From positions 1-16,500 of the forward strand of contig CAXIUT010000224.1 of NCBI GenBank assembly GCA_964035545.1: DNA of 16,500 nucleotides. The letters are read 5' to 3'. The position numbers and the translations under genes were made by a program. Of this stretch, positions 1 to 16,500 are shown one piece after another. The notes beneath the pieces were generated by a model. The model made no database searches, was not told where the DNA came from, and saw only the letters and a list, made by a program, of their open reading frames with translations. Each line of letters starts with the position of its first letter. The first letter of the stretch is position 1. Origin of the DNA: Bugula neritina (taxonomy: Eukaryota > Animalia > Bryozoa).

Positions 1-81
1 CCCAACCCCAACCCCAACCCCAACCCCAACCCCAACCCCAACCCCAACCCCAACCCCAACCCCAACCCCAACCCCAACCCC
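1..81 (+). repeat. Telomere, (CCCCAA)n, left chromosome end
   Basis: Perfect CCCCAA hexamer array at the window start; same repeat as Tetrahymena macronuclear telomeres. Confidence 0.98.
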
Positions 82-142
82 ATAATATATATTGACTGAT
101 ATAATAGTAATGACAGATATTAATTATTACAGAATGACAGAA

Positions 143-1515
143 TCAATTTTTTATTTTTTGGTAGTAATCGTGTTTTATGTACCATTCACTTTTTATGCCA
201 ATGTAAAAGTATCCGCATGGAACGGAGTCAAGACTGTCAAGAGTTCTATGCATCTCTTTTTATAGGTTTTTCACTGGAGGACTCTGATAAATATAAAACT
301 AGCCAATAATGATGTCTGCTGCTATTTTGAAAACATCTCCTAGAGTTTATAGTGGTCCAAAAAGTGCTTAGATGATGAGTTCGTTGGGCAATCGCAGCTT
401 AATGGTGGTTGATTTGTAGACTTGTTGTGTGACTAGATATTAAAATTAAGTTTTTCTTCTGCTTTGAAATTTAGCATTTTTCATGTTATTTTTAACTATA
501 TTTCTCCAGTATCCGACCATTTAGTTGTTATTACTATTTTACATCTAATTATCCATATCAAAAATAAGATGTTCTACTTCTTTTACATCATGTCTTTTAT
601 GATAGATTCTTATTTTTCTATTGGTTAGTGGTTTACTCATGATATTTTTTCTAAATGCTAGTAATTTATCAAGCATTTATGCGTAGTTGGCTTCTTCAAG
701 TTTTTATTTAGGAAATTATTTTTAGAGGTTTACGGTTTAGTTGCTTGGCAATTTAAGATCTTGAGGAAGAAAAAGGGGTTAATTATTTATAGGTTTTTAT
801 TTATTATGATTATGTTTATTATTATATTAAGATAGTTGATCTTTATGGTTTTTAAGAACTGTTTCAAGACATTATTAGACAAAGAATAGTGCTTGAGTAT
901 CAAAGGAATCAAGAAATATTTTTTATTAATCTTCTTAGAATCCGATTGATTTCAAAAAAGTTAAAACAAATTCATGATCTATCACTACTTGTTTGATTTT
1001 TGGGTTACTTTTTTTGAGAACTCTGTATTTTAAATCATATGAATCTTTAACAATATTTTTTATTATTTTATAAACAGTTTAAAGGATCTTTACTAGCTAT
1101 GATCCTACCCATCGGTACTTCTACAACAACTTATTTTATAAAGTTTAAGCCAATATTAAGATCCTTGCTTATGTTAGTTTGGGTTTTTATTATTTTACTT
1201 TAGTTATTGTACTTTTTTAAGGTTTTACAGGCTAATCTATTAAGCTTGGTTGTTCGGGTGACTACTTCTTTTGACCTAGAATTCTATCCATTTCTGTGCG
1301 GATGACTGCCACTACTCTTAAGGGTATTTCCATTTTTTAATATTGTTGGTCAGTGATGGTGTTGACGGCTTATGGAGAATCGTACCAATTTTTTCTGAGC
1401 CTAAATAAGCAAAAGAGTACTACTATTCCATGTGACTGAATGCTTAGTATGGTTTTCCAACCTTCTAGGAAACATGCTTGAAGAGTTCTTTAACGAAATC
1501 GTTGTCTTCTTTCAT
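143..1515 (-). CDS. PUB + UBX domain protein (UBXN6/PUX2-like p97/Cdc48 adaptor), ~450 aa
   Basis: TAR=Glu. ATG at 1515, 20-nt intron at 1401-1420, TGA at 143-145. PUB-like segment ILETVYKIIKNIVKDSYDLKYRVLKKSNPKIKQVV...FLKSIGFEE. UBX-like C-terminus YKSTTIKLRLPNELIIEALFGPLETLGDVF...FYIYQSPP...TLDSLDSVPCG. Confidence 0.8.
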
Positions 1516-1649
1516 CTATTTATCTCAAAAACTAATCAAATTATATAAAATTGATATTCAATCATAGAATAATTAATCAAAGAATGCGTTATTAATTTTA
1601 TACGATATAAAATTAGATGACAATATCAGAGGAAGATACACCTTATCGA

Positions 1650-3867
1650 TCATTGATATATTTTATATTTTTAGAGATCTTGTTGATTTCGATAAATACA
1701 GGTAAATAATCCAGCATTCTTTTATTTCTTCTTGTGGGAAGAACCGATGAAGTTGCCCATATCTCTTTGTAACATCTTGACCAACTTCTTTGTTACTGGA
1801 GTGGAATGGTCCATGGCAGGACTCATATTTATTTATATCAACCATGGATTCAAATTCTAGTCTATCATGAAATCATACCCTACCAACTAGAAAAACCCCT
1901 TCTTACCTGTTACACTTCCCTAACAAGCTTTTATGCTCCAAACTATTATATTTTTTATTTTATCTTGAATTATTTTCCATTTGTCTGCACCAATGTAGTC
2001 ACTAAATGTTTTCATGTCCCACATGCTATCTTAGATCATAGTTTTTTTATGATATTTCTGAATAGAGTTATTAGTAAGATGTTGAAATTTATTATGGATG
2101 TTATCTAAACTATATTAATCACCACAAAATCTGAAGTAACATTCTTAATAAAACCATATAACTGGAGGATTGTAGTCTTAGATTAAAACCCATTGTCTTA
2201 AATCAAATTTTTTACTATGAACTAGCAAAGGATTCTCTATGTATTTTTGAATAACGAATTGACACTACTTTCCTAAACAATAATTAGCTATATCATATAA
2301 ATTGTTCATGCATTTGATGCCTCTTCCTCTTGATAAAACTGAATAATGGTATAATTACAATTCGGTTTGGCGATCCATACGTTTCGGAATCCATTGATGT
2401 CTAGTTGTGGGTCTAACTTTTATAAACGGTTGATCATTATTCTTATCTATTTATCCATTCTGTCGAAAACGAATGATTAGTATTGTTCTAGTGATGGAGG
2501 TTGGAATGTGTCAGCTTAGCGGATTTTGTCCAATTTTTACTTCTTTAAAGATTAATCCCCTGAATATATATAATAATACAATCTGTTGTCTATGTAATTA
2601 TCTACCATTATTAGGGTGTAATGACTGGAAAAGAACCATTATTTATATTATTAACTAGTTAACTAAAGGCTAATAGTCTTCTTTTCAAGATGTCGAATAT
2701 CAATCTCATTTTTAGTTCAAGACCTTTGTACCTAGAATGATCAACAAGAAATCTTTTGGCACAACTCTATGCAAAACTGAACTTGAAATTTTATACAAAG
2801 TTTTAAAAATCTACTTGATCACCCAAATCAAAACATCTTGGATAAAATCGATCAATATCGATATTATACTGCAAGATAAGTGTTTTCAGGCGTCTAGCTA
2901 GCCCATATTTGCTAGTTAGATGATGATTATTGTTGAAATGGTTGACAGATTGTCCGTGTTTGAGGTTGCCATAGTCAATATCGCAAGTCTGAGTGGTCCA
3001 TTTGAGGTCAAAGAATTGAGAATAGACATCTTAGTTTTAAAACCAACCTTTATCATTGAGAGTTCTTCTAAATTAGTGATATCCTCCTTTAACTATATAT
3101 ACTTTTTGGTTCATTCCACAACCATTTCTTTTCTTCCAAGTAGCCATATCGATATTCTACTACTTGTATTCATCTTATTCTTCTTACTATTCACTGTCAA
3201 CATCCATATAATCTCCATTCTTTACTTTTGATTTTTTTGATAAATTTACTGTAGGCAATGGTTTTGCCTTATATTTCATACTGCGGAGTTGCTAGTTAGT
3301 CATGTGGTTGAATTTAAGACGAGGACGATCTTTTCCCTTGCTATCTAGCAGTTTAGATAAAGAATCTTAGACTTATTGGGTTTTCATGGGCATTATCGGT
3401 TATACTTTTTTACCTTTTAGATGGTTAAAATAGTCGTCTCGGCGATTGAGGATAGTCATCAAGGATACTATCTGGTTTCTGTAGAATGTTTTGATATTGG
3501 GATGGTCTAGAAGTTTAGCTTTGAGGCTGATTCTGTTTTTGGCAACAAATTTCTTTTTCGATTTGGGTCTGATGGCTCTTTAAAAGGTTTTTTTTTATTC
3601 AGGTTATGTACTTTCTATCATTTCTAGGCTATTTTTTCTACCAAGATCGTGTTTACTGGCTTTGAATCTAAGTCCTTGAACTAATCCATTAAATTACTGT
3701 TCGTCGGTATCGATATTTTCTATATTTCCATTACTTTTATAGACTTCTTTGATATTTTTGGGTACGGATGATGTTTCTAGATAATTTTTGAGTAGGGAAT
3801 GTAGAGTGAGTTGATTGTTGGGGTTTATTTTATCAGAAAATCCGTTAGTAAATCGATGCTTAAACAT
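1650..3867 (-). CDS. TTLL3: Tubulin-tyrosine-ligase-like protein, TTLL3/TTLL8 (tubulin glycylase) clade, ~725 aa
   Basis: ATG at 3867, 20-nt introns at 2560-2579 and 2339-2358, TGA at 1650-1652. Motifs KVYIVKGGY, KGWFEN, FYPRCFDL, NVWIAKPNFLSRGRGI, QKYIENPLL, KFDLRQWVL, HLTNNSIQK, FELVGYDFMID, PWLIEINMSP. Confidence 0.9.
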
Positions 3868-3921
3868 CAGTTGATAAAATTATTCCTTGATATAATCAAT
3901 CAAACAATAAAACATCTACTA

Positions 3922-4383
3922 TCATTATATCTCCTTATCTAAATCCTATCTATAATTCTACAACTTTAACATCAAATCGTTTTGATCACTGTTATAATAT
4001 GAATATTAGTACAGTATATCATATTGTCTTCTACTCTTTTAGGCGTCTGCCTCATTAGTAAATATGAAAGCTTTAAAATCTTTATTTAAAAAGTAAATGT
4101 AGTTGAATAAACATAACAAAGGAACTGCGAAGGGCATTGCTGAGGAAAGAATCGATTGAGGACGGAAAGTATAGTAGATGTTGGTAAGAGGTGGTAAAAT
4201 AAGCATTGCTAAAGCGGATTTTAAGGTTGAAGAAAAATGAGGACTAAAGGCATTGTTGGAATATATTATAGCTAGTTGTTTAAGGGCTTATTGTTTTAGT
4301 TAGTAAGCGCGAATGAATTATTTTATTTAGGATTTTGTTGGGTTTTATGATGAAGTAGGTTTTTATGATTTATTTTCTTACAT
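3922..4383 (-). CDS. Hypothetical protein, 153 aa, with 1-2 hydrophobic segments
   Basis: Continuous frame under TAR=Glu from ATG 4383 (MEENKSEKPTSSENP...) to TGA 3922-3924, filling the space between neighbouring genes. Hydrophobic stretches LKSALAMLILPPL and AMPFAVPLLCLFNYIYFL. No family recognised. Confidence 0.65.
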
Positions 4384-4770
4384 TTATTATTTTAAATAGA
4401 TTTGTTTAAATTTAATTAATATCTATGAATAGTTTATAAGCAATAGAAGGCTTTAAAGTTTACTCAAATGATAAGTTTTTATAAAAAATAATTTGAAATG
4501 GGACAAAAGTTGTGTAATTAATTAATCTTTCAATGTTCACATGATTTACCTTTTTATCCTTTCTTTTTATCAAAATAAATATCGAACAATAGATAAGAAA
4601 ATCTATCAATCAATAGACTTCTTATTCATTCTATAAAATTAAACATAAGTTAATGATGAGAGAAGTATGTGTGTTTTGGATTGATATAATAGATAAAAGT
4701 AGAACGTTTCATTATTTTGAGTTGATTTAACGTGGAAGCTGTGATGAAATTCTCAATAATAATTTGAATT
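4384..4770. promoter_or_regulatory. Probable divergent promoter region (largest intergenic gap, 387 nt)
   Basis: AT-rich spacer between divergent ATGs at 4383 (-) and 4771 (+). Positional inference only. Confidence 0.4.
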
Positions 4771-6852
4771 ATGCCACCGAAAGTCGTAGGAGCTAAGACA
4801 TAAACAGTCAAAGTCGTTGTCAGATGTCGCCCTCCATCATAAAAAGAAAAAAATGCTTAACATAGACTAGTTGTTCATGTTGATGAAGGCATGAGAAAAA
4901 TAAGTGTTGAAAATCCTAATGCATAAAAAACTAACTTACCTCCTTCTAGAGATTTTACCTACGATGCTGTCTTTGCACCTAATTGTAAACAAACTTCAGT
5001 CTTCTAAGAAACTGCTTTGCCCATCATTGAAAGTGTTCTTGAAGGATATAATGGAACCATATTTGCTTATGGTCAAACAGGAACAGGAAAAACTTTTACA
5101 ATGGAAGGTGTTAATGATGATCCTAGTCTTCAGGGAATCGTACCTAGATCTATTCAATACATCTTCTAGGCTATTAAGAATGCAGCTACGACTAAGAAGT
5201 ATTTAGTCCGTATAAGTTTTTTAGAGTTGTATAATGAAACTTTGGTTGATTTGTTAGTTAATCCTGCACATAAAGATGAGAAGGCTAAGAAGAAGAAGTT
5301 GTAGATTAGATAGGTGCCAAATGTTGGAATTCGAGTTGATGGTTTGATGTAATTTGTCATAGAAAATGAAAAAGAAATCTTTCATAAATATAATGCTGGT
5401 AAGAGTCATCGAGTGACTGCTTTTACTGAAATGAATGCCTAATCATCTCGATCTCATTCCATTTTTTCAATTATTATTTAAAATCAAGAAGAAGTTAATG
5501 GCAAAATATCAACTAGAGCTGGTAAGTTAAATTTGGTTGATTTGGCTGGTAGTTAAAGACAAGATAAAACTAAAGCAACTGGATTACAGAGATAACAAGC
5601 TATTAATATCAACTTATCTCTTTCTACTTTAGGATTAGTTATTAAGAGTTTAGTTGATTCTAAATCAAAACATATTCCTTATAGAGATTCTCAATTGACT
5701 AGATTACTTCAAGATTCTTTGGGAGGTAATACTAAGACAGTAATGATAGCTAATGTTGGTCCATCATTTTATAATTATGATGAAACTTTATCAACATTGA
5801 AGTATGCTAATAGTGCTAAAAATATTAAGAATGATGTGAGAATTAATGAAGATCCTAAAGATGCTCTTTTGAGACAGTTTCAAGAGTAGATTAAAAAGCT
5901 TAGATAACAGGTTGCTAAAAATATGACTGGAGAAGGAGGAGAAATGATAGAACATATTATTGAGGAAGAAGATCCTGAAGATATGGAATAAAAGTTGAGA
6001 AATTAGACATAAAATATGAGGAAAAAGTTTTAAGACGAAAAAGCTTAAATATATAAGAAAAAGAATATGCTTTAGGAGTAAAAAAAGGGACTTCTTAAAG
6101 CTATCGAAGAGAAAGAAAAGGAACAATCAACATATAAAAACAATCAATAGAATTTGATTAAGAAGTTAAAGAAGATGTAAGGCAAAGTGCAGACTGGAAA
6201 GGAAGAAGAGGAAGCAGCATTAAAGAAAGCTGAAGAATTGAAAAAGAAGATGAATGAGTTAGAGCAAAAAAGAGAGAATCAGAGGAAGATATAGTAAAAA
6301 TTAAAATAGAAATAAGACTCAATAGGGAAGATAGAGACAAAATACAATAGTTTAAAGGAAGAAAATGAAGATAAGAGTCTTCAAATAAAACAAAAAGTGA
6401 AAAGATTAAGAAATTTATAGAACTAAAATAAGTAACTTGAAGAACAATATGCGGCATAAATTGAAGATCTTCAGTAAAGAAGAAGAATTTTACAAAAATA
6501 ACTCAAACTAAAAAACTTTATTATTGACTACTTTGTTCCTGCTGAATACATCGAAATGATTAATTAAAAAGTGGTTCTGAATGAGTAAAATGACTAGTGG
6601 GTCTTACCGAATTTGTAAATATCAGGCAATTCTATGAGACTGCGAAATCCTGGAGTGAATTTCGATGAAAGATAAATGACTGAAGAAATGTTAGAGGAGA
6701 GAAAGATCAACTAATTCGTTAAAAACTAAATTGATACTCATCCTAACGTCTACTTTTCATACGGAGAAGATGGAGGTGTGATTAGACAGGTTCAGCAAGA
6801 TCCCACTAAAACAAAGAAGACGAAGAAGCGACCGTCATCAAAGAAGAAATGA
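4771..6852 (+). CDS. Kinesin-2 motor subunit (KIF3/FLA10-like), 693 aa, no intron needed
   Basis: [12 protein letters not shown]-loop GQTGTGKT, switch I NAESSRSH, switch [29 protein letters not shown]. Kinesin-2 neck [17 protein letters not shown], then a coiled-coil stalk and a tail with IIDYFVP. TGA at 6850-6852. Confidence 0.95.
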
Positions 6853-6900
6853 TTATCATATCTAAAATTATATTAAGAGTTATATTGATAGATAATATTT

Positions 6901-7134
6901 ATGTTTTGGGGACGTAATAAGACTGAGTTCGATATCGTAGTGGTGGATCTGGATAACTAGCCTCGAAAGTTGACTGTTAAGTTGGAGGTGAGTCCTGAGT
7001 AGATTCTTAAAGAGTTGAAGATCGAAGATGCTTACTTGATCATCTAGGGAGTATTTATTACTCAAAATGTGTTGAAAAAGGTCATTAAAGATGGAACTAC
7101 ATTTTACGCATGTCCAGTTAGAGACAAAGGATGA
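6901..7134 (+). CDS. Small 77-aa protein, possible ubiquitin-like (beta-grasp) fold ending in Gly
   Basis: MFWGRNKTEFDIVVVDLDNEPRKLTVKLEVSPEEILKELKIEDAYLIIEGVFITQNVLKKVIKDGTTFYACPVRDKG-TGA. Purine-rich like the other sense strands and flanked by AT-rich spacers. Hydrophobic spacing resembles ubiquitin. Confidence 0.65.
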
Positions 7135-7186
7135 TATGATAGTCATTTATTATTATACTTAATACATGAAATAATGCAATGTTTGA

Positions 7187-7879
7187 TCAATGGAAATATC
7201 TAGACTCAATGGATTAGTTGTTAATTATTTTGGCCAATCGATGATACATTGACTATTGTAGATTATTTTTCTTTTTTTAGTTCTATACTAATTTATAGAT
7301 ACTTTTCTCTTGAGAAAGATATGATCTGAGTCGTCTTAAAATGAGTAACGTGATTTAAAATCTTATTCTGATGTTTGTTCTTTTAGTGCTTTCATTTATT
7401 TATGAAAATCATCGTTTTATTCTTTTGTCATTAAGGAGTTATTATGAGATGTTTATTTTTTGGTTTTTTTGTCGTTATTTTAGTAAAAATTATATGCCAA
7501 ATCGAATAAATTCAAATTACCATATAAACCTTGTTTCTGTTATTTAGTTTATTATTTGACTTATTTTTATGCCTTAATATTTTTATCAACCGTTTCAGTT
7601 TATTTAACTTAAGCCTCATCTATTTTCTTCTGAACAATATTTTTAAAAATATTATTAGTATTTTATTTTTGATGTTACTATTTTGATAACTCTATTTCTG
7701 GTTCTTTTTTTACTTAAACAAGTTTAAGTTAATTCATATGTAAATGACCATTGGAAGGATGTTACTAATGCAAGTGTTTTAATGGAATAGTCGAGTTATT
7801 AACTTCTATCTAAAAATGAGATTATTAATACAAGAAGGATAAGGAAGAAGAGAATTAGATATTTCCTTTTAGTATTCAT
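7187..7879 (-). CDS. Hypothetical secreted K/E-rich protein, ~216 aa
   Basis: ATG at 7879 gives a signal-peptide-like N-terminus MNTKRKYLILFFLILLIEVNNS after removing a 22-nt intron at 7810-7831. A second inferred 20-nt intron at 7283-7302 leads to TGA 7187-7189. The model is not homology-anchored. Confidence 0.5.
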
Positions 7880-8043
7880 TCGATATTGAATTTATTTCTT
7901 CTATAATATAATAATAGAATTCATAAAAATAGTCTGATATTATTTTTGTATCATTTGATAAAATATTAATCTATTTATGAGATATTTACGACATTGATGA
8001 CTTATTTTTTTGATTTTTGATTATAATAATATTTGATTTAATA

Positions 8044-8651
8044 ATGGGAAACAATCATGATCAGTATTTTGGTAGTGATAAACGTAAAATAACAATACTT
8101 GGGTTATAGAATTCAGGAAAGACAAGTAAGATCTATGAATATGATAGCTTTTATTCGATTTTTGAGGACTGATATTGTTGACTTCAATACTAAAAAAACT
8201 AAAAATCTCAATATCTAAGACATTAATATCAGCAATTTACATGTCAGCTTTTTTGTATTGATGTAGAGATGTAGGATCTAGCAGGAGGAGAAAGACAAAG
8301 AGTATTTTGGAAACAACAGATAGAAGGAACTCAAGGCATTATGTTCTTTATTGATGCTAGTAGCTCCAATTAAGATAAATAAAAAAGCTTTGAAGAGCTA
8401 GATAAACTGTCTAAACTGGTAGGAGTTAATATTCCCATAGCTATAGCTCTGACAAAAGTTGATCTGATGTAGACCATATCTTGGAATAGTTTTAAAGCCA
8501 ACTTGAGTAAATCAATGCTGAGCAAATATTCATCTAGAAAGTATGAAATGAATGAGTTAGGTCATTAAAGGTGGGAGAAATAGACTATAAGAATAAAGAA
8601 AGTGTAAAAAGTTTAGTTGGATGGTTACTTGGATAAACAAAAGCTATATGA
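8044..8651 (+). CDS. Divergent Arf-like (ARL) small GTPase, 181 aa
   Basis: MG N-terminus; G1 GLENSGKTT; G3 FDLAGGERQRVFW; GIMFFIDAS; G4 TKVD. Introns at 8126-8147 (22 nt), 8255-8274 and 8541-8560 (20 nt) restore the frame. TGA at 8649-8651. Confidence 0.88.
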
Positions 8652-8760
8652 TATCTTTGGAATTAGTTCATAAGATATAATTGTCATATTTATCATTATG
8701 GTCATTGTTATCATTTTATCAAAATTATCATTATTGCTATAATTTATATTATTGGTTTTA

Positions 8761-8841
8761 GGGGTTGGGGTTGGGGTTGGGGTTGGGGTTGGGGTTGGGG
8801 TTGGGGTTGGGGTTGGGGTTGGGGTTGGGGTTGGGGTTGGG
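8761..8841 (+). repeat. Internal telomeric tract (GGGGTT)n, oriented as the right end of segment 1-8841
   Basis: 81-nt perfect array, the exact reverse complement of 1-81, followed directly by unique sequence. Confidence 0.97.
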
Positions 8842-8906
8842 AAATAACATTTTTAAGATATTTTGATAATATTATGATGCTTTAGTCTAATTTAAATTAC
8901 TTTTTA

Positions 8907-10130
8907 ATGAAAAAACTATCAGTCTAAGATGTACTTGATCAAAAAAATCCAAAAGATCTGATATAATAGTATGGATCTCCTCTTTATGTCTACAGTGAAA
9001 AGATACTCTAACAAAAAATCAAAAAGCTTTTAAAAGCAGCAAAAGGATTTTAGATAAGTTATGCACTAAAAGCAAACACCAATTCTTCAATTGTAAAACT
9101 AATCAGAAAATTAGGAGTAAAGAAAGTAGATGTAGTTTCACCAGGTTAGATATATAAAGCCTTATCATGTGGGTATTAACCAAAAGAGATAATGTATACA
9201 TAAAATTTTATATCGAGTTAATAGATAGAATATGCTTTAAAGAAAGGAATCACAATCAATGTTGGTGCTTTAGATACTCTGATAAATCATAAAGATAAAT
9301 TAAAAGGAAAAGACATTTTTGTAAGAATTAATCCTCAAATGGGTGCAGGGACAAGTTATCACGTCATTACTGGTGGACCACAAAGTAAATTTGGTGTTTA
9401 CTAATCTAGTATTGATAAGTTTATCTAAATAGCAAAGGAAAATGATATACATATCAAAGGACTTCATCAACATATTGGATCAAATCTTAAAAAAAAAGAT
9501 TAAGAAGTATTTTTGGAAACAACTGAATATATCTTTTCTTTGCTACCTAAGTTTGATGAAGTGACTACTGTCAATATTGGAGGGGGACTTGGAGTTAAAT
9601 ATAAAGAATAAGAAGAAATATCTGATCCTGAATAACTTTATGCTAAAGTGAGAGTAATGAAAAAAAGATGGGAATTAAAAATTGGTAGATAAATTAAAAT
9701 ATCAGTCTAACCTGGGAGATTTATAGTTGCTGATTGTGGGACACTTCTTTGTACTCTTACAGCTTGTAAATAAACTCCTTAAATGATATTTTTTGGAACT
9801 GATACTGGATTAAATCACTTGATTCGACCTGCTCTCTATGGATCTCATCATAATGTAATTAATTTAACAAATAATAAAGATTAAATAAAGAAAAAAGCTA
9901 CTATTTGTGGAAATATTTGCTAATCTTCAGATGTTTTAGCAAAAGATATTTAATTTAGTGGAAAATTTGGAGATATTTTAGGAATCTAAAACTCTGGAGC
10001 TTATGGATTTTGCATGAGTTCTAATTATAATGAAAGACCAAGACCAGCTGAAGTATTAATAAATCAATAAAATAAGAATATATTGATTAGAAAAAGATAA
10101 ACTTATGAAGACCTTTGCTAAAAATTATGA
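8907..10130 (+). CDS. lysA: Diaminopimelate decarboxylase (PLP-dependent), 407 aa, no intron needed; alternative in-frame ATG at 8874
   Basis: LIEEYGSPLYVY, YALKAN (PLP lysine), VDVVSPGE, VRINP, TGGPQSKFG, GLHQHIGS, NIGGGLG, EPGRFIVA, LIRPALYG, GNICESSD, GAYGFCMSSNYNERPRPAEV, RKRETYEDL. These motifs match LysA rather than ornithine decarboxylase. TGA at 10128-10130. Confidence 0.93.
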
Positions 10131-10169
10131 TAGTTATGAAGTTGATAAATTTATAAAAATTATTTGTTA

Positions 10170-11384
10170 TCAAGAGACAAAGGGTTTTCTATCCAAGTTG
10201 CAGAGGCCAAGGAAAAAGCCTTAGAGAAGATTGAAAGGATACATAACGTTTAGAATGAAGATATCTTCTGAAAACTTAGCGAACATTAAAGCAGCTTCTC
10301 CATGTTAGCTTTAAATAATCATATTTCTTGTCGAATTAATGATATTTTTTTCTTTGAAATCTAGCATTAATTTACCATCCTAGCCTTTTTCTGCTAGCCT
10401 TGTTGTAAATTTTTAAACTCTTTCGTATTAACATTTTTATTACACTGCTTTAAGATTGCTAAAACGATCTGTTTTATGTATAACTTGTTTTGGTTTCAAA
10501 ATAGATAGTTCTTGTTGATGAAATCCCAGTATATTAGATCGATATCCAATATAAGACACTTATTCTTCAACTGGATGTTCTTATTATTTCTTTTATACAG
10601 GTTCTATCTTTATAATCTATGAGATAAATCCTTTTTAGTTATGAATTTTCTTCATTAATTTGTATTAAGTTCTAGTCATATTAGATTTGATAGTCGCAAT
10701 ATTACCAATTATACCATTTTATTTTCTAAGAATATCTATGTGACTTGATATTTTGAATCCTGATTTTTTTGCTCTAAGAATGTGTCTTTTATCTTAAAGT
10801 AAATAAAGATCAAAAATGCTTTAAAGTGAAAAGAATTTATTACTTGTGATGATGACTAGACATTTAATCATTTTAGATTTAGGAATTGGGAAGGAAATTA
10901 AATCGTTTATGGTTGTTGATTTTAGTTGTTTCTTTGTTTTTAATGTTTCTAAATTATATTAGATATCTGAATTTTACTCTTAAGAAAAATCTTAGTTTTT
11001 AATTATTTATGACCTTATCATTTTCTAGGATGGTTATTATTAATACATTTTTGGTTTTTATTCAATTTTCTACTCATTTGTATTTTTGTACAGTTTTCTT
11101 AATGAAGATTGAGGAGAATATTAGAACTCCTATGATTCTTCATATTAAAAAACAAGTTAATTTTTATCATTTTCCTCATGATCTACTTTATTTACGACTT
11201 CTTGTTATCTAGGACTGGGTTCTGATGCTTGGTTTGTTGAATTTATATGACTTTTGTCCTTTTCCTCATGAATATCTGAGTTATTTTAGCTTGGCTGAAT
11301 CATTATAATTTGAGTTTATAAATGCTGAGGTTAGTTCTAAGTAATATTATCTGTTATGTTGACAGAAGGAGGTTAACTATTCAT
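10170..11384 (-). CDS. Tubby-like protein (divergent C-terminal Tubby domain, acidic disordered N-terminus), 404 aa
   Basis: ATG at 11384, TGA at 10170-10172. PIPKSKMIKC, FDLYL, IKSNMTRTEY, EVSYIGYRSNILGF, LDFKEKNIINSTRNM and LMFAKFSEDIFILNVMYPFNLLEGFFLGLCNLDRK follow the Tubby motif order. Confidence 0.82.
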
Positions 11385-11610
11385 ATTTGTGATTTGGATT
11401 ATTAATTGGGATAAAAGTTTAAAAATTTATTAGTAAATTCAATTGAAAATACTTTTCTTCTTTTTTAAATTAAATGATTAATCAAATGCATTATTTTTTA
11501 GATTTTTTGGGATAAAAAAGAAATCTAAAAGCTGAATATAAATGCGGTTATTTGATATAAATGGATTTTTTGATATTGAATAGATATAAGTTGTAATTAA
11601 TAGTTACATA

Positions 11611-13832
11611 ATGACCTAAATGTATGACTAATAAAGTCATAAACACTACAATACTAATCAACTAAGAAATAATATGATCAAAACTAAGAAGAATAGTATT
11701 CTTTATGATAGAGAGCAACTTTACGGATAAAATCTTTAACTAAGAACTAAAATTAAATAACTCATTGAGTTCAATACTAAAATTAAAACACAGTTATCAA
11801 TAACTTAAAAGTAAAAAGTTAATCTTTGTAATATTGCTGAAGATGAGGTTATTCATCCTAAATTAATACCAAGATCACAGTCCGGAAATGCCAGAAAATC
11901 TGGGACTAAAATCATGGCTCAAAGTGGTGCACAATCTGTTCTTAATAATACACTTCAAAAAGAGGTATTTTGATTGAAATGTAGAAACAAAATATGGCTT
12001 TAAAGAAGATGATTCGAGAACAGAATCTAGAGATATAAAAATTAAATAACTAAAATCAAAGACTGAAGAAAACAATGAAATATACGAGAATGACTGAAAT
12101 ATTGACAGAAAATAAAGAACTTATTGATTAAACTTTGAGATTGAAAGACATTATAGCTTAAAAAAAGGAAAATTAAGGAAAGTTATTATTATAATTCGGT
12201 GGATAAGTTGATTTTTTGAAAAAGAAGTTAAATTACTAACGAGACAGTGAAAAAAGAAATGGATATTAACTAAAAAAACAGTTAGATATGAATGCTGAAC
12301 TGAAGGAAAAGTTGACTGATATTGAAACTAAGAAGATATAAACTGAGAAAAGATTGAATAAATAAAATAAGGCATTGAGAAATTAGATAACTGAGTTGAA
12401 AACAAAAGTTTATTCTCAAACTGTTATTAAGAGTAAAGATTGTTAACGTGATGAGTGTAATAGAATAAAGAAAGAGAAGGCATAATTAAAAAGAAAGAAT
12501 TAATATTGTGAAAGATAGATTAAGAAACTTAAAGAATAAGCAACTTCTTTGAAGAGAAAATCTTTACATCAAAAATATTAAACTTAAAAGGTAGAACATG
12601 AAAGATCTGTATCAAAGAAGTCAGAAAATAAAAATAAATCTGTAAGAAAAGATACGAAAATTAATTTTACATAATCTCAACTTACATAGATGAAAGTTGA
12701 TACTAAAGATTAAAAAAAAGCAATATCAAATCATAAAGAAAAAGAGTTAAGTAATGTTTCTTTGTAAAAAAGTGATCAATCCAGAATAAAAAATGAAGAT
12801 AAAAAATAATAAAAAGGAAAGGAATCTTTTGTTAGTTTGCCATCTCCTAGTCAACCTTAAGTCGTTAAAAAATAAATAAAAAAAGAAGATAGTTATGAAT
12901 CTTATGATCTTTAAAGTTCAAATGAAAAATAATAAATTGTTGATAAAAAATAAAATAAAAAAGAAGAGAAAAAATAAAAATAATTATTAAAAGAAGATTC
13001 TGATGGATAATATTAATAGCTTGAATATGATGAATTTTTATCGAATTCTAAAGATGTTAAATAGTCTAAAAAATAAGCAAAATAAAACGATAAAAATCCC
13101 AAAAATGAGTCTAAAAAATCACTTAAAGAGCCTGAACAAAAAAAATAAGAGAAAGATAAAAAGAAGAAGTAAAAAAGTAAGAAAAAGTTAAAATAAGAAT
13201 ACGATGATTCTGATTAATAATTACTTTATAACTCGAAAAAAGAAAAATAAGTATAAAAAGTTGAATAAGGTGATAAAGCATAGTTGAAGGTCATAAAGGA
13301 AACTTTATATTACAAATTTTTGGCTCAAAATTATACTTATGACAATTTTTGTAAAGACATAAAGGAGAGTAAAATGACTCAATTTACTGTAACTGAAGTT
13401 ATGAATCTTCTCAGTGTTGAACCATTTTTACTTGATGATGTTCAAATATAAACAGTAATCATTTATTTATTCGAAACAACTGAATTGACTGGTAAAGAAA
13501 TAGTAACTTCTAAAGACTTCATGAAAAAGATGAAGAAATTTATCGGAAAAACTAAATCTATCAGTGAAGATTAATAACAATAATGTTTAACAGCTTTATT
13601 AGAAGTAATAAGACAAGATCTATTGGCTGATGACTAGATGAGTAAAATGTTTTAATAAAATGATCAAGGAGATGGTACATTGACATTATCGTCATTTAAG
13701 AAAGTGATGAAAAGATTTAAGATAAAAGATAAGGTGCTTGAATGTGCAATAGCACAGATAACTTTAGTTTCTCAGGATATAAATCATCTTAATTCTTAAT
13801 AGTTTTTAAAAAGATTTATGGAGTAATAGTGA
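11611..13832 (+). CDS. Coiled-coil protein with an IQCE-like N-terminal region, K/E-rich linker and degenerate C-terminal EF-hand, ~733 aa; alternative in-frame ATG at 11542
   Basis: Continuous frame under TAR=Glu with one 20-nt intron at 11965-11984 that removes an in-frame TGA. DREQLYGENLELRTKI and LKKTMKYTRMTEILTENKELIDETLRL resemble IQCE N-terminal motifs. MFEENDQGDGTLTLSSFKKVM is EF-hand-like. TGA at 13830-13832. Confidence 0.7.
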
Positions 13833-13874
13833 TTCAATCTATCATATATTTACTATTTAATAACTATAAATCAT

Positions 13875-15091
13875 ATGGAGCTAATCGCTTTGTTACTCAT
13901 TGTCTACTTCCTCATTGGAGCATGTATCTGCTTGCTGATATGTGTCAATCCCAATGACAAGGGTTTCTTAGGAGCTATGAATAGATTTTTCTTTAGAAAG
14001 TTTCCTACCTTGTTCAGGTAATGCATCAATTATTTAGTAATTTTATCAGAAGAGTTTTTGGGGAAACTGTTCTTAATTGTCTTGGAGGAGTTAAACATTA
14101 CTTAATGGAGACTAATCATCCAATTGTTCAGATATTCTATCTGGCTATTTCTCCTGGAGGGTACAATATACACTATTTAGATTTACGTGCTATCTAATCT
14201 ATGGTATTTTTAAACATATGCCCAATAATTAAGTATCTTCTACTCACGTGGTTCTTGCTAATTTTCTAGCTTTTGTTTGTTTCTGGGTTTACTACAAAGC
14301 CTGTGCGACTTCTCCTGGGCATATAACCTAAGAAAATTCACGAGAATATGTTAATAGGTTCAAAAACTACTATGATGGACTGATTTATAAGTAAAAAAAT
14401 CCTTGTAGAACTTGTAAATTTGATAAACCAGCCCGATCAAAACATTGTTCTATTTGTCAGATGTGTGTATCGAAGCATGATCATCACTGTATCTGGTACT
14501 TAATATACTATTTAGGATAAGACAGTGTGTAGGTTAGAAAAATTACAAATATTTTGTCTCATTTTTGTTTTTACATGCAATTTGGACTCTCTACTTGTCA
14601 TACATAGGCATTTTATCTTTAAGCGAATATATTAAAAGAATAAACTTCTATAATATGAAATTCAATATGGATGGAGTGATAGTTAAAGGTGATGGTTTGT
14701 TGGCTATTCAGGTATTTTATCATTTATTTAGTATCTTTTTTTGAGTGAAACTATATTCTTTTTTTTGATTGTTATGTGTGCTATAATGGGTTTTACTTTG
14801 TTTATTTTCGTTATGTATCATTTCTATTTGATTGGCAAAGGTCAAACAACAAATGAACGAGTCAAAAAAAATGATGATATTGAATACTATACGAAATAGC
14901 TAAAAGAAATCAAGAAGATAAAGGAGAAGTTTAAAGAAGGTGTTAATGAAATAGAATGGAGATAAAGTAGTGTAAATAGGGAAGATCTTTATCTATATGA
15001 AGAAAATTGTCAACGAAATAAAGCTACTTTGGAGAGAGTTATTGATAAAAAAGGATTTTTTGCCAGACTAGAAGATGTCTTCAAGGCTTGA
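13875..15091 (+). CDS. DHHC palmitoyl acyltransferase (Swf1/ZDHHC4-like), 378 aa
   Basis: [47 protein letters not shown] and QTTNE motifs, and transmembrane segments. Four 20-nt introns at 14018-14037, 14161-14180, 14496-14515 and 14712-14731. TGA at 15089-15091. Confidence 0.93.
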
Positions 15092-15151
15092 GATGTGAGT
15101 GTTATTCATACATTAAAATAATATACTGCTGTTGAACAATTACTTTAGTCA

Positions 15152-16247
15152 TCATTCTTACTAATTTGTTTCTTATTTTTTCTCCAACTATTATTTTTAT
15201 AATTCTTATTCTTCGTCTTCCTCTATCTTTTCTTCTTTTTCTTTTTCTTATTCAACTTATTAAACTTCTTCTTCTTTCTCATAATTATCAGCTGCTCCTT
15301 AGTCATCAACAAACAATCCTTTATCATAAATAAACAGTTCTCTTCCTGTCCTTAATTGACCTTTAGTTTTACCTTTCTTCTATTCTTCATCTTTCTTTTT
15401 CTTGCCATCTGCTTATTTACGCTTTTTTCTATCTTCTTTCCACTTCAAAAAGACCTCATATGTAACCAAAGGATCTGAATAAGGATATACGTACTTGATT
15501 TATTTTAGTTCATGAGTTTATTACGTTACTAGTCAATCTTTTATTCGATATTAATTTGTTCTTTTAGAATTTAATTTTTTCCTGCATCTTTTTTGAGTCG
15601 ATATCCTGGAGGAAGGCAATGTTTGTACTTACAACGATCTCCTCCATTAGGACAACTCCAATTCCATCCATATTTCTCTTTTTAACAGGCTTCCAGGAAG
15701 AACTTGCATACTATATCAGAACGGCAGCCTTTAACTATTTACCTTTCCTTTTAACCAATCATCTTACCCAGTTAGTCTTAACTGAGTTAACTTAGTTCTT
15801 TTCCTCCAATAGCATTCATAATTAACTGTGTTCTCTGGTCAACATAAAGATCGATTTCTTAAGTTCTGTCCATGGTTAGGTCATGAGAATAGATACATTT
15901 TTTTCCTTTTTGACAAAGTCCTTGTTTGAAGTAAGGACAGACGATATTAGCAGGATCTTATTAATCTGACTATTCTGCTTGTATTCGATTGACATCATGA
16001 TAGAGTGAGTTAAGTAGAGCTTTTTCTTACTCTTCTCTCTTTTTCATTTTTTTTTTCTCAAAAGCGTCTGCTTCAAGTTTACTCATGGCGACTCCTTGAT
16101 GTTTAACTGTTTGTTCTACTCCTTTAATATATCTGGATGATAAGATGGATACTTTTGAACTTGTTTACTTTTGTTTTTATTTTTGAGTCCGAACGTTCTA
16201 TCTTCTATAACTTTTTATTGTTTTTTCTTTTACGATTTTTTCGACAT
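15152..16247 (-). CDS. ZC3H15: Zinc finger CCCH protein 15 / Tma46 / DFRP1 homolog, 351 aa
   Basis: [104 protein letters not shown]. 20-nt introns at 16133-16152 and 15475-15494. TGA at 15152-15154. Confidence 0.93.
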
Positions 16248-16400
16248 TGAAGTGTTGAAATATAATAACAATATTCAAATATTTGTAAAAGAATTTACCT
16301 CAAAATAATCAAAATACTATCAAAAATTAAATAATTACTATTTAATCAATATCTTTTTAATATAAGATTGATATATCATTTAATCTTGTTCATATCCGAA

Positions 16401-16500
16401 TGGGGTTGGGGTTGGGGTTGGGGTTGGGGTTGGGGTTGGGGTTGGGGTTGGGGTTGGGGTTGGGGTTGGGGTTGGGGTTGGGGTTGGGGTTGGGGTTGGG
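16401..16500 (+). repeat. Telomere, (TTGGGG)n, right chromosome end
   Basis: Perfect array running to the window end (may be truncated by the window). Confidence 0.98.

Follow-up and report, generated by a model that had tools for sequence, protein, structure and literature searches.

A lysA gene with TAA and TAG as glutamate codons on a ciliate chromosome within the Bugula neritina assembly, and its possible role in lysine salvage from prey

Introduction

Contig CAXIUT010000224.1, found in the genome assembly of the bryozoan Bugula neritina (GCA_964035545.1), carries a gene that resembles prokaryotic lysA, which encodes the diaminopimelate (DAP) decarboxylase. This locus raises three connected questions: in whose genome the gene resides, from where it was acquired, and what a single enzyme of the DAP pathway would do there. 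The window, by which we mean the whole analysed stretch (positions 1 to 16,500), is the entire 16.5-kb contig (C233) of an assembly of 216 Mb in 321 contigs. A sequence-only reading of the window had described a full-length, intronless lysA recoded into the ciliate code, possibly acquired by horizontal transfer, and had proposed that a bacterivore uses it to harvest lysine from digested cell walls. In this work, we examine these proposals against homologues, metagenomes and the rest of the assembly.

The reading that we favour as a whole, and hold with moderate confidence, is that lysA specifies a cytosolic enzyme of a peritrich-type ciliate living on the bryozoan, that the gene derives from an old prokaryotic transfer, and that it serves to salvage DAP from prey. 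The parts of this reading are not equally firm, and they are considered separately below.

The lysA Gene and Its Predicted Product

The gene starts with the ATG at 8907 and ends with its sole in-frame TGA at 10128-10130, which leaves 407 sense codons, 22 of them TAA and 4 TAG. Read in its two alternative frames, 8907-10130 contains 10 and 14 TGA codons, so chance does not account for a frame this long without TGA. When the frame is read through, its score with TIGR01048 (the NCBIfam lysA model) is 340.6 bits, above the curated cut-off of 297.9, although 25 stops within the match (21 TAA and 4 TAG) add nothing to it. The match covers model positions 11-414 of 417 in a single unbroken frame, from which it follows that the gene has no intron; the earlier description of a full-length, intronless DAP decarboxylase was therefore correct, with exact coordinates.

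The longest stop-free piece of the product (59 aa) was compared with 1.84 billion representative proteins. The best matches were short fragments with 57-74% identity, followed by full-length prokaryotic LysA. From the contigs in which those fragments originated, together with a scan of Joint Genome Institute (JGI) metagenomes, eight further lysA genes were recovered, complete or nearly so (L007/L008, L091, L092/L093, L094, L095, L121-123, L124 and L125). All eight are intronless, encode about 400 aa, end with TGA and have TAA/TAG on Glu columns. We refer to them as the ciliate relatives; five or all eight were used, depending on the comparison.

The two-domain build of the family is present in the window gene, with an N-terminal barrel that binds pyridoxal phosphate (PLP; PF02784) and a C-terminal sheet domain (PF00278). 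Stop-free pieces match PF02784 positions 21-166 and PF00278 positions 25-50, the read-through frame matches PF02784 with 128 bits (positions 5-247), and both domains are also annotated on pieces of the relatives. A protein atlas search with a 160-aa piece returned the Pfam family only and was taxonomically uninformative. The N-terminus aligns at residue ~10-16 of prokaryotic LysA, which indicates that lysA has no presequence, as had been supposed when a long targeting sequence was judged absent. Two in-frame ATGs lie upstream (8874 and 8877) and are not kept in the relatives, whose lysA begins at the homologous methionine of MK(K/N)Y... On the evidence of family model, domains and length, the product is very probably a LysA-type diaminopimelate decarboxylase (EC 4.1.1.20).

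Genetic Code

The meaning of the stop-type codons was examined by aligning lysA, with X at each TAA/TAG, to 200 prokaryotic LysA sequences and five of the ciliate relatives. Twelve TAR codons (TAA or TAG) fall where the prokaryotic sequences are at least 80% conserved, and 10 of these stand on Glu columns, mostly 100% Glu, including those of SPGE, EPGR, Cys-Glu-Ser and PAE. Counted over all residues opposite TAR, Glu leads in prokaryotes (weighted count 22.4; Lys is next with 7.3) and in the other ciliate genes (Glu 132, Lys 55, Gln 10). At individual sites, ordinary Glu codons take the place of TAR in the relatives: GAA/GAG occurs at the Glu81 column in three of them and at the Glu339 column in all five compared, while the Glu268 column has a standard Glu codon in L007, L091 and L095 and TAR in L092 and L094. 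TGA ends all compared ciliate lysA genes.

The position of TAR codons on conserved Glu columns establishes that the nuclear code is of the peritrich type (NCBI table 30), in which TAA and TAG specify Glu and TGA is the sole stop, and not the classic ciliate code with TAR as Gln. The sequence-only reading was right about the many in-frame TAA/TAG codons and about their presence at conserved Glu sites, of which Glu81, Glu268 and Glu339 are the catalytically relevant ones; its assignment to a ciliate code stands for the recoded stops and has to be narrowed from the classic to the peritrich type. The gene offers a clean and independently checkable demonstration of TAR = Glu, with stop-type codons at positions that are near-invariant Glu in 200 homologues.

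Active Site and Substrate

The 200 prokaryotic LysA have 64 columns with conservation of 95% or more, and the six ciliate genes (the window gene and five relatives) all keep 56 of these, including K54, H191, G225-227, E268, R307, Y311, C342, E343, D346 and Y378 in E. coli numbering. In window numbering, K55, H189, G225-227 and Y366, belonging to the motifs xxKAN, HxHxGS, GGG and AGAYG, are kept in six of six, and the Lys55 column is 100% K across both the prokaryotic set and the ciliate genes. The DAP-specific set of the window lysA is also present (E268, R307 and Y311 of LxRPxxYG, C338, E339 and S340); the serine of Cys-Glu-Ser is replaced by Cys in L007, L094 and L095. We take the Cys-Glu-Ser motif, which is supplied by the partner subunit, to be a mark of DAP decarboxylases, and the roles of the PLP lysine and the DAP-specific residues are presumably those established in published LysA structures. 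The catalytic motifs, described as intact in the earlier reading, are indeed kept (PLP lysine, GGG loop, EPGR and Cys-Glu-Ser); the active-site residues are intact, and the protein is predicted to be active.

Conservation of this kind bears on whether the enzyme may have changed its substrate or function and ceased to make lysine, having become, for instance, a decarboxylase of D-ornithine/D-lysine, ornithine, arginine or carboxynorspermidine. Such a drift would agree with the long stem branch of the ciliate clade (0.73-0.86 in the trees described below) and with the changes in eight conserved columns and the loss of one conserved loop throughout that clade. We nevertheless consider it improbable, given that the curated lysA cut-off is exceeded despite the unscored stops and that Cys-Glu-Ser, Arg307, Tyr311 and other active-site columns are retained. 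Solved structures speak in the same direction: the top PDB matches of stop-free ciliate pieces are exclusively DAP decarboxylases, and ornithine decarboxylase (ODC), D-Orn/D-Lys decarboxylase, BtrK and the arginine enzyme ADC score far lower. The N-domain piece reaches 42 bits with the highest-scoring ODC chain and 58-67 with solved DAP decarboxylases, and there is no ODC among the PDB matches of the C-terminal piece; a eukaryotic ODC-type identity was rejected on these grounds.

Residence in a Ciliate Nuclear Genome

Both ends of the contig consist of telomeric repeats, (CCCCAA)n at 4-81 and (GGGGTT)n at 16402-16497. The contig represents a telomere-capped ciliate chromosome, and the ciliate is a passenger within the bryozoan assembly. 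It does not stand alone there, as 9 of 15 sampled small contigs begin with a ciliate telomere; with a mean length of about 30 kb for the 15, the ciliate share of the assembly can be estimated at about 5 Mb. The base composition of lysA is that of its surroundings (28% GC, compared with about 29% for the contig). The Arf-like gene upstream of lysA has kept its place in L007 and L092, and the convergent gene on the other side has done so in L007, L091 and L092. A DHHC palmitoyltransferase gene lies on the same side of an internal telomere-like tract as lysA.

The only feature of the locus that would suggest bacterial contamination, or a dead pseudogene, is the prokaryote-like character of the sequence itself, and we give these explanations practically no credence. 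Bacterial translation would halt at any of the 26 in-frame TAA/TAG codons, which stand on Glu columns, and the gene keeps its order with eukaryotic neighbours in related ciliates. A pseudogene is contradicted by the 407-codon frame, open where the alternative frames have 10-14 TGA, and by the purifying selection described in the next section. Searches of the 216-Mb assembly for NlpC/P60, dapB, dapF, Amidase_2 and AnmK returned zero matches, and with such typical bacterial families unmatched, bacterial contamination is not an issue. Recoded stops, open frame, gene order and selection together refute both explanations: lysA is a resident nuclear (macronuclear) ciliate gene. The sequence-only reading had reached this conclusion from the recoded stops, and eukaryotic neighbours, conserved order and host-like base composition now add to it.

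Apart from lysA, the decarboxylase fold is matched in the assembly only by intron-split ODC-like genes on a megabase-size host contig (C4). Several exon-split ODC-type matches occur there within about 20 kb (2148000-2167200), and this cluster may represent tandem ODC or antizyme-inhibitor-like genes.

Ciliate Relatives, Age and Selection

The protein identity of five compared relatives to the window LysA is 53-70%, and the next metagenome matches after the relatives, at 44%, are ordinary bacterial genes. The order of kinesin, a small gene, Arf-like gene, lysA, convergent gene and coiled-coil gene is the same in the window and in L007, and it is found in part in L091 and L092; the L092 contig also begins with a CCCCAA telomere. 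Between the window gene and five relatives, synonymous divergence (dS) is saturated and non-synonymous divergence (dN) is 0.14-0.41. The GC content of lysA tracks that of each host genome, from 28% to 44%. At the other end of the scale, a near-identical strain, represented by contigs from a study of another host species, differs in lysA at five sites, all of them synonymous third positions.

Parts of the window stretch 8843-10400 were also found in sequencing runs labelled with two other organisms, B (X3, X4, X6 and X11) and C (X7 and X10), and in a run of a marine plankton metagenome (X9). In the organism-B runs X3 and X4, the matching contigs are 95-100% identical to the window stretch, which indicates the same or a sister ciliate in another host's sequencing.

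The gene is thus present in at least nine environmental ciliate lineages with TAR = Glu (the window and its eight relatives). Saturated synonymous sites, shared gene order and a spread over at least nine lineages imply long residence, and, as judged from these comparisons, lysA is an old resident maintained by purifying selection. A recent horizontal transfer, which the first reading had left open, is excluded by the nine lineages with the same code, the three with shared gene order and the saturation of synonymous sites.

Prokaryotic Affinity and Origin

With TAR read as Glu, the window LysA is 41-45% identical over its whole length to a subfamily of prokaryotic LysA that is recognizable by the loop GHHxH(V/C)(I/V)TGG. 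According to record titles, this subfamily includes Spirochaetota, Brevinematales, Clostridia, Bacteroidales, Desulfovibrionaceae and others, as well as Methanobrevibacter, Bathyarchaeia, Woesearchaeota, Nanoarchaeota and Patescibacteria. The gene was called prokaryote-like at the outset, and its nearest full-length relatives are indeed bacterial and archaeal LysA. They share with it a length of ~405-415 aa, the same two domains without extensions, and the active-site columns. The ciliate clade differs from them in having GAG(T/P)S(Y/H)H in place of GAGHHxH, in missing the loop with a conserved Arg, in changes at six other conserved columns, and in its TAR = Glu coding and AT-rich nuclear DNA.

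Prokaryotic homologues were gathered through a prokaryotic proxy (P0015) picked from the matches of the 59-aa piece, and maximum likelihood trees of 109 and 66 rows were computed under LG+C20+F+G4, with X at TAR, E. coli LysA as the outgroup and branch supports from the Shimodaira-Hasegawa-like approximate likelihood ratio test (SH-aLRT) only. In both trees, the six ciliate genes included group together as one clade, with a stem of 0.73-0.86 and SH-aLRT values of 99 and 100. In this phylogenetic check, which had been proposed for the gene, the clade attaches in or beside the prokaryotic subfamily, with no supported sister, in trees limited to prokaryotic and six ciliate genes. Bit scores of two long stop-free ciliate pieces add to this picture: with the subfamily they reach ~130 and ~125, with the plastid LysA of Arabidopsis 67 and 53, and with the E. 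coli enzyme 58 and 68.

A plastid-type DAP pathway persists in deep-branching dinoflagellates (PMC4802802), and the ciliate gene could likewise be an old eukaryotic or plastid-derived LysA, a vertically inherited remnant of an alveolate DAP pathway. The composition of the trees, with no other eukaryotic LysA among the rows, leaves room for this idea, and the best PDB match of the N-domain piece is Arabidopsis LysA, by 6 bits only. A remnant of this kind nonetheless seems very improbable, since each piece scores roughly two-fold higher with the prokaryotic subfamily than with the Arabidopsis plastid enzyme, since the search of 1.84 billion representative proteins with the 59-aa piece gave only ciliate-clade fragments and subfamily members, and since the metagenome scan contained no TAR = Gln or standard-code copy closer than 45%. 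The two-fold lead in bit score, together with the placement of the clade, favours an old prokaryotic transfer over a plastid-type remnant. We conclude that an ancestor of the TAR = Glu ciliates probably took lysA, long ago, from a prokaryote of this subfamily.

Two sequences with N-terminal extensions (P0108 and P0020) were considered as possible eukaryotic relatives; P0108 was set aside, as it sits among tightly packed bacterial-style genes, and P0020 may be of either kind. The subfamily is also common in genome-reduced DPANN archaea (Woesearchaeota, Nanoarchaeota, Nanohalarchaeota and Micrarchaeota) and in the candidate phyla radiation (CPR; Parcubacteria, Saccharibacteria and Peregrinibacteria). 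These organisms are thought to live off other cells and may also use a stand-alone LysA.

Pathway Context and Proposed Lysine Salvage

In the salvage model, the ciliate would filter-feed on bacteria and digest them in food vacuoles, and meso-DAP freed from prey peptidoglycan would reach the cytosol. There, the PLP-dependent LysA would decarboxylate meso-DAP to L-lysine in a single salvage step. Since the probable transfer, the gene has descended vertically, been recoded, taken on the base composition of its host and stayed under purifying selection. Four points of the model are inferred: that the enzyme is active, that it is cytosolic, that the other pathway steps are missing and that the DAP comes from prey.

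It had been remarked that the window contains no other DAP-pathway gene, and the proposed genome search extends this to the whole assembly, with its ~5 Mb of ciliate DNA. No match was obtained for dapF (DAP epimerase), dapB or ddh (meso-DAP dehydrogenase), and dapA and dapL (LL-DAP aminotransferase) had only sub-threshold matches, located on megabase-size host chromosomes. With so little ciliate DNA in the assembly, the missing dap genes are weak evidence. A stronger argument for salvage comes from ciliate nutrition: to our knowledge, lysine has to come from the diet in the ciliates that have been studied, and these have no DAP pathway. Taking these considerations together, we lean towards stand-alone salvage of DAP from prey as the role of lysA.

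The modest sample of ciliate DNA could also conceal dap genes, and LysA may then finish a lysine pathway that the ciliate encodes in full, or one to which a bacterial symbiont contributes the DAP. Many sessile ciliates bear ecto- or endosymbionts, host genes of bacterial origin (lysA, dapF and dapB) complete a symbiont pathway in sap-feeding insects, and a murein-peptide peptidase was not found in the assembly. We regard a complete or shared pathway as unlikely: dapF, dapB and ddh are unmatched and dapA and dapL matched only below threshold in the host, the lysine requirement of studied ciliates argues against it, no bacterial contigs are evident in the assembly, and nine divergent lineages would require an equally conserved symbiosis.

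Several observations weigh against the favoured reading, in which an old prokaryotic LysA salvages prey DAP. As regards the enzyme, eight otherwise conserved columns are changed across the ciliate clade (the changes include S123A, H151T/P, D223N, P231K/A/S, F302L and G345S/T/A), and a short loop is missing whose Arg is otherwise 97% conserved; none of the positions changed across the clade is known to us as a catalytic residue. As regards the origin, the ciliate clade has no supported sister group where it attaches, in the basal polytomy of the subfamily, plant, oomycete, choanoflagellate and anaerobic/rumen-ciliate LysA are absent from the trees, and the ciliate lysA may belong within a wider eukaryotic clade. 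As regards the pathway, the absence of dap genes carries little weight in about 5 Mb of ciliate genome. The search for peptidoglycan hydrolases that had been suggested as a check gave zero hits in the assembly for the DAP-freeing enzymes Peptidase_S66, NlpC/P60, Amidase_2 and AnmK, and hence lends no support to a route through peptidoglycan peptides within the DNA sampled. Finally, RNA sequencing runs were searched for the lysA stretch, and none of them contains it.

Comparison with Known Systems

E. coli LysA (1KNW) and Arabidopsis plastid LysA (6N2A) share the fold family and the catalytic residues of the window LysA, but they are more distant from it than the prokaryotic subfamily is (58-68 and 53-67 bits, respectively, for the two pieces, compared with ~125-130). 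Both enzymes operate within a complete DAP pathway. Sap-feeding insects such as mealybugs and whiteflies likewise have a nuclear lysA of bacterial origin without the upstream pathway in their genome; their DAP comes from an obligate endosymbiont, whereas prey is the likelier source for the ciliate, which has no known symbiont.

Other parallels come from ciliates. PMC13198582 lists lysA among the laterally transferred genes of anaerobic ciliates (Armophorea, Plagiopylea and Muranotrichea), beside peptidoglycan-recycling genes; as described there, that gene is also prokaryote-derived, occurs in bacterivorous ciliates and belongs to prey-linked amino-acid metabolism. The window gene differs in class and habitat, in its peritrich-type TAR = Glu code and in its occurrence in marine and other metagenomes. 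Rumen protozoa convert DAP to lysine, according to PMC7058926, which cites Martin et al. 1996. The proposed physiology, from cell-wall DAP to lysine, is the same as here; that case is one of biochemistry in gut ciliates of another class, whereas ours is known from the gene alone. The main text of Ricard et al. 2006, on gene transfer to rumen ciliates, mentions neither DAP nor lysine. Both the salvage idea and a ciliate lysA transfer have therefore been published already, and what appears to be new is the lineage, the peritrich-type ciliates.

Neighbouring Features and the Internal Telomere-Like Tract

The features of the window are collected in Table 1. Between the Arf-like gene and lysA lies an internal telomere-like tract, which raises the question of whether two chromosomes were joined in assembly. 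In L007 and L092, these two genes stand side by side without a tract between them, which shows that the contig was not misjoined from unrelated chromosomes. The tract is also spanned by Logan contigs from two runs (X1 and X2), with the same 98-nt spacing as in the window. The conservation of gene order across the tract is useful evidence on how the chromosomes of this ciliate are built.

The Arf-like frame 8182-8877 (+) has no TGA before the tract; it encodes a hydrophobic tail followed by (GV)n through the tract and ends with a TGA at 8875-8877, 30 nt ahead of the lysA ATG, as read on the assumption that there are no tiny frame-changing introns. If a form of the chromosome ended at the tract, the Arf-like gene would be left without a stop codon.

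Many other contigs of the assembly combine a CCCCAA start with several co-oriented internal GGGGTT tracts. Two contigs of host size, C5 and C7 (17.7 and 15.8 Mb), start with (CCCCAAA)n, a 7-nt repeat of the TTTGGGG type, unlike the 6-nt CCCCAA repeat with which the ciliate contigs begin.

Table 1. Features of the 16.5-kb window, with positions counted from its first nucleotide
Feature	Position	Strand	Remarks
Kinesin gene	4768..6849	+	PF00225 70 and 114 bits on pieces; order kept in L007
Arf/Arl-like small GTPase gene, upstream of lysA	8021..8760	+	PF00025 26.8 bits, on L007 orthologue piece
Internal (GGGGTT)13 telomere-like tract	8761..8838	+	Between Arf-like gene and lysA
Short 5' leader	8839..8906	+	Between internal G4T2 tract and lysA ATG
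lysA coding sequence	8907..10130	+	407 codons and TGA; intronless; 22 TAA and 4 TAG as Glu
Lys55 in YALKAN, presumed PLP Schiff-base lysine (E. coli LysA K54)	9069..9071	+	Column 100% K
Glu81 (SPGE), TAG	9147..9149	+	Column 100% Glu in prokaryotes
Gly225-Gly227, GGG phosphate-binding loop	9579..9587	+	Invariant in all homologues and ciliate genes
Glu268 (EPGR), TAA	9708..9710	+	Column 100% Glu in prokaryotes
Glu339 (Cys-Glu-Ser), TAA	9921..9923	+	Column 99% Glu; E. coli C342-E343
Convergent downstream gene, possibly Tubby-like	10173..11438	-	PF01167 at both domain ends, both below cut-off
DHHC palmitoyltransferase gene	13833..15088	+	PF01529 27.2 and 19.8 bits on pieces; cut-off 28.7

Implications

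Peritrichs are major grazers of bacteria in water, biofilms and sewage treatment. We tentatively suggest, at somewhat less than even chances, that an ancient, clade-wide lysA gives free-living, aerobic, bacteria-filtering ciliates of the peritrich type a standing route from prey DAP to lysine, one that arose separately from those of anaerobic and rumen ciliates; a classic "essential" amino acid would then be partly self-made in a whole group of ciliates. Should the enzyme function in the way suggested, peritrichs would gain lysine from a bacterial wall component that is unusable to most eukaryotes. This would change estimates of the amino-acid needs of peritrichs and of the flow of nitrogen from bacteria to their grazers, and DAP would become a biased marker of bacteria, a problem already recognized in the rumen.

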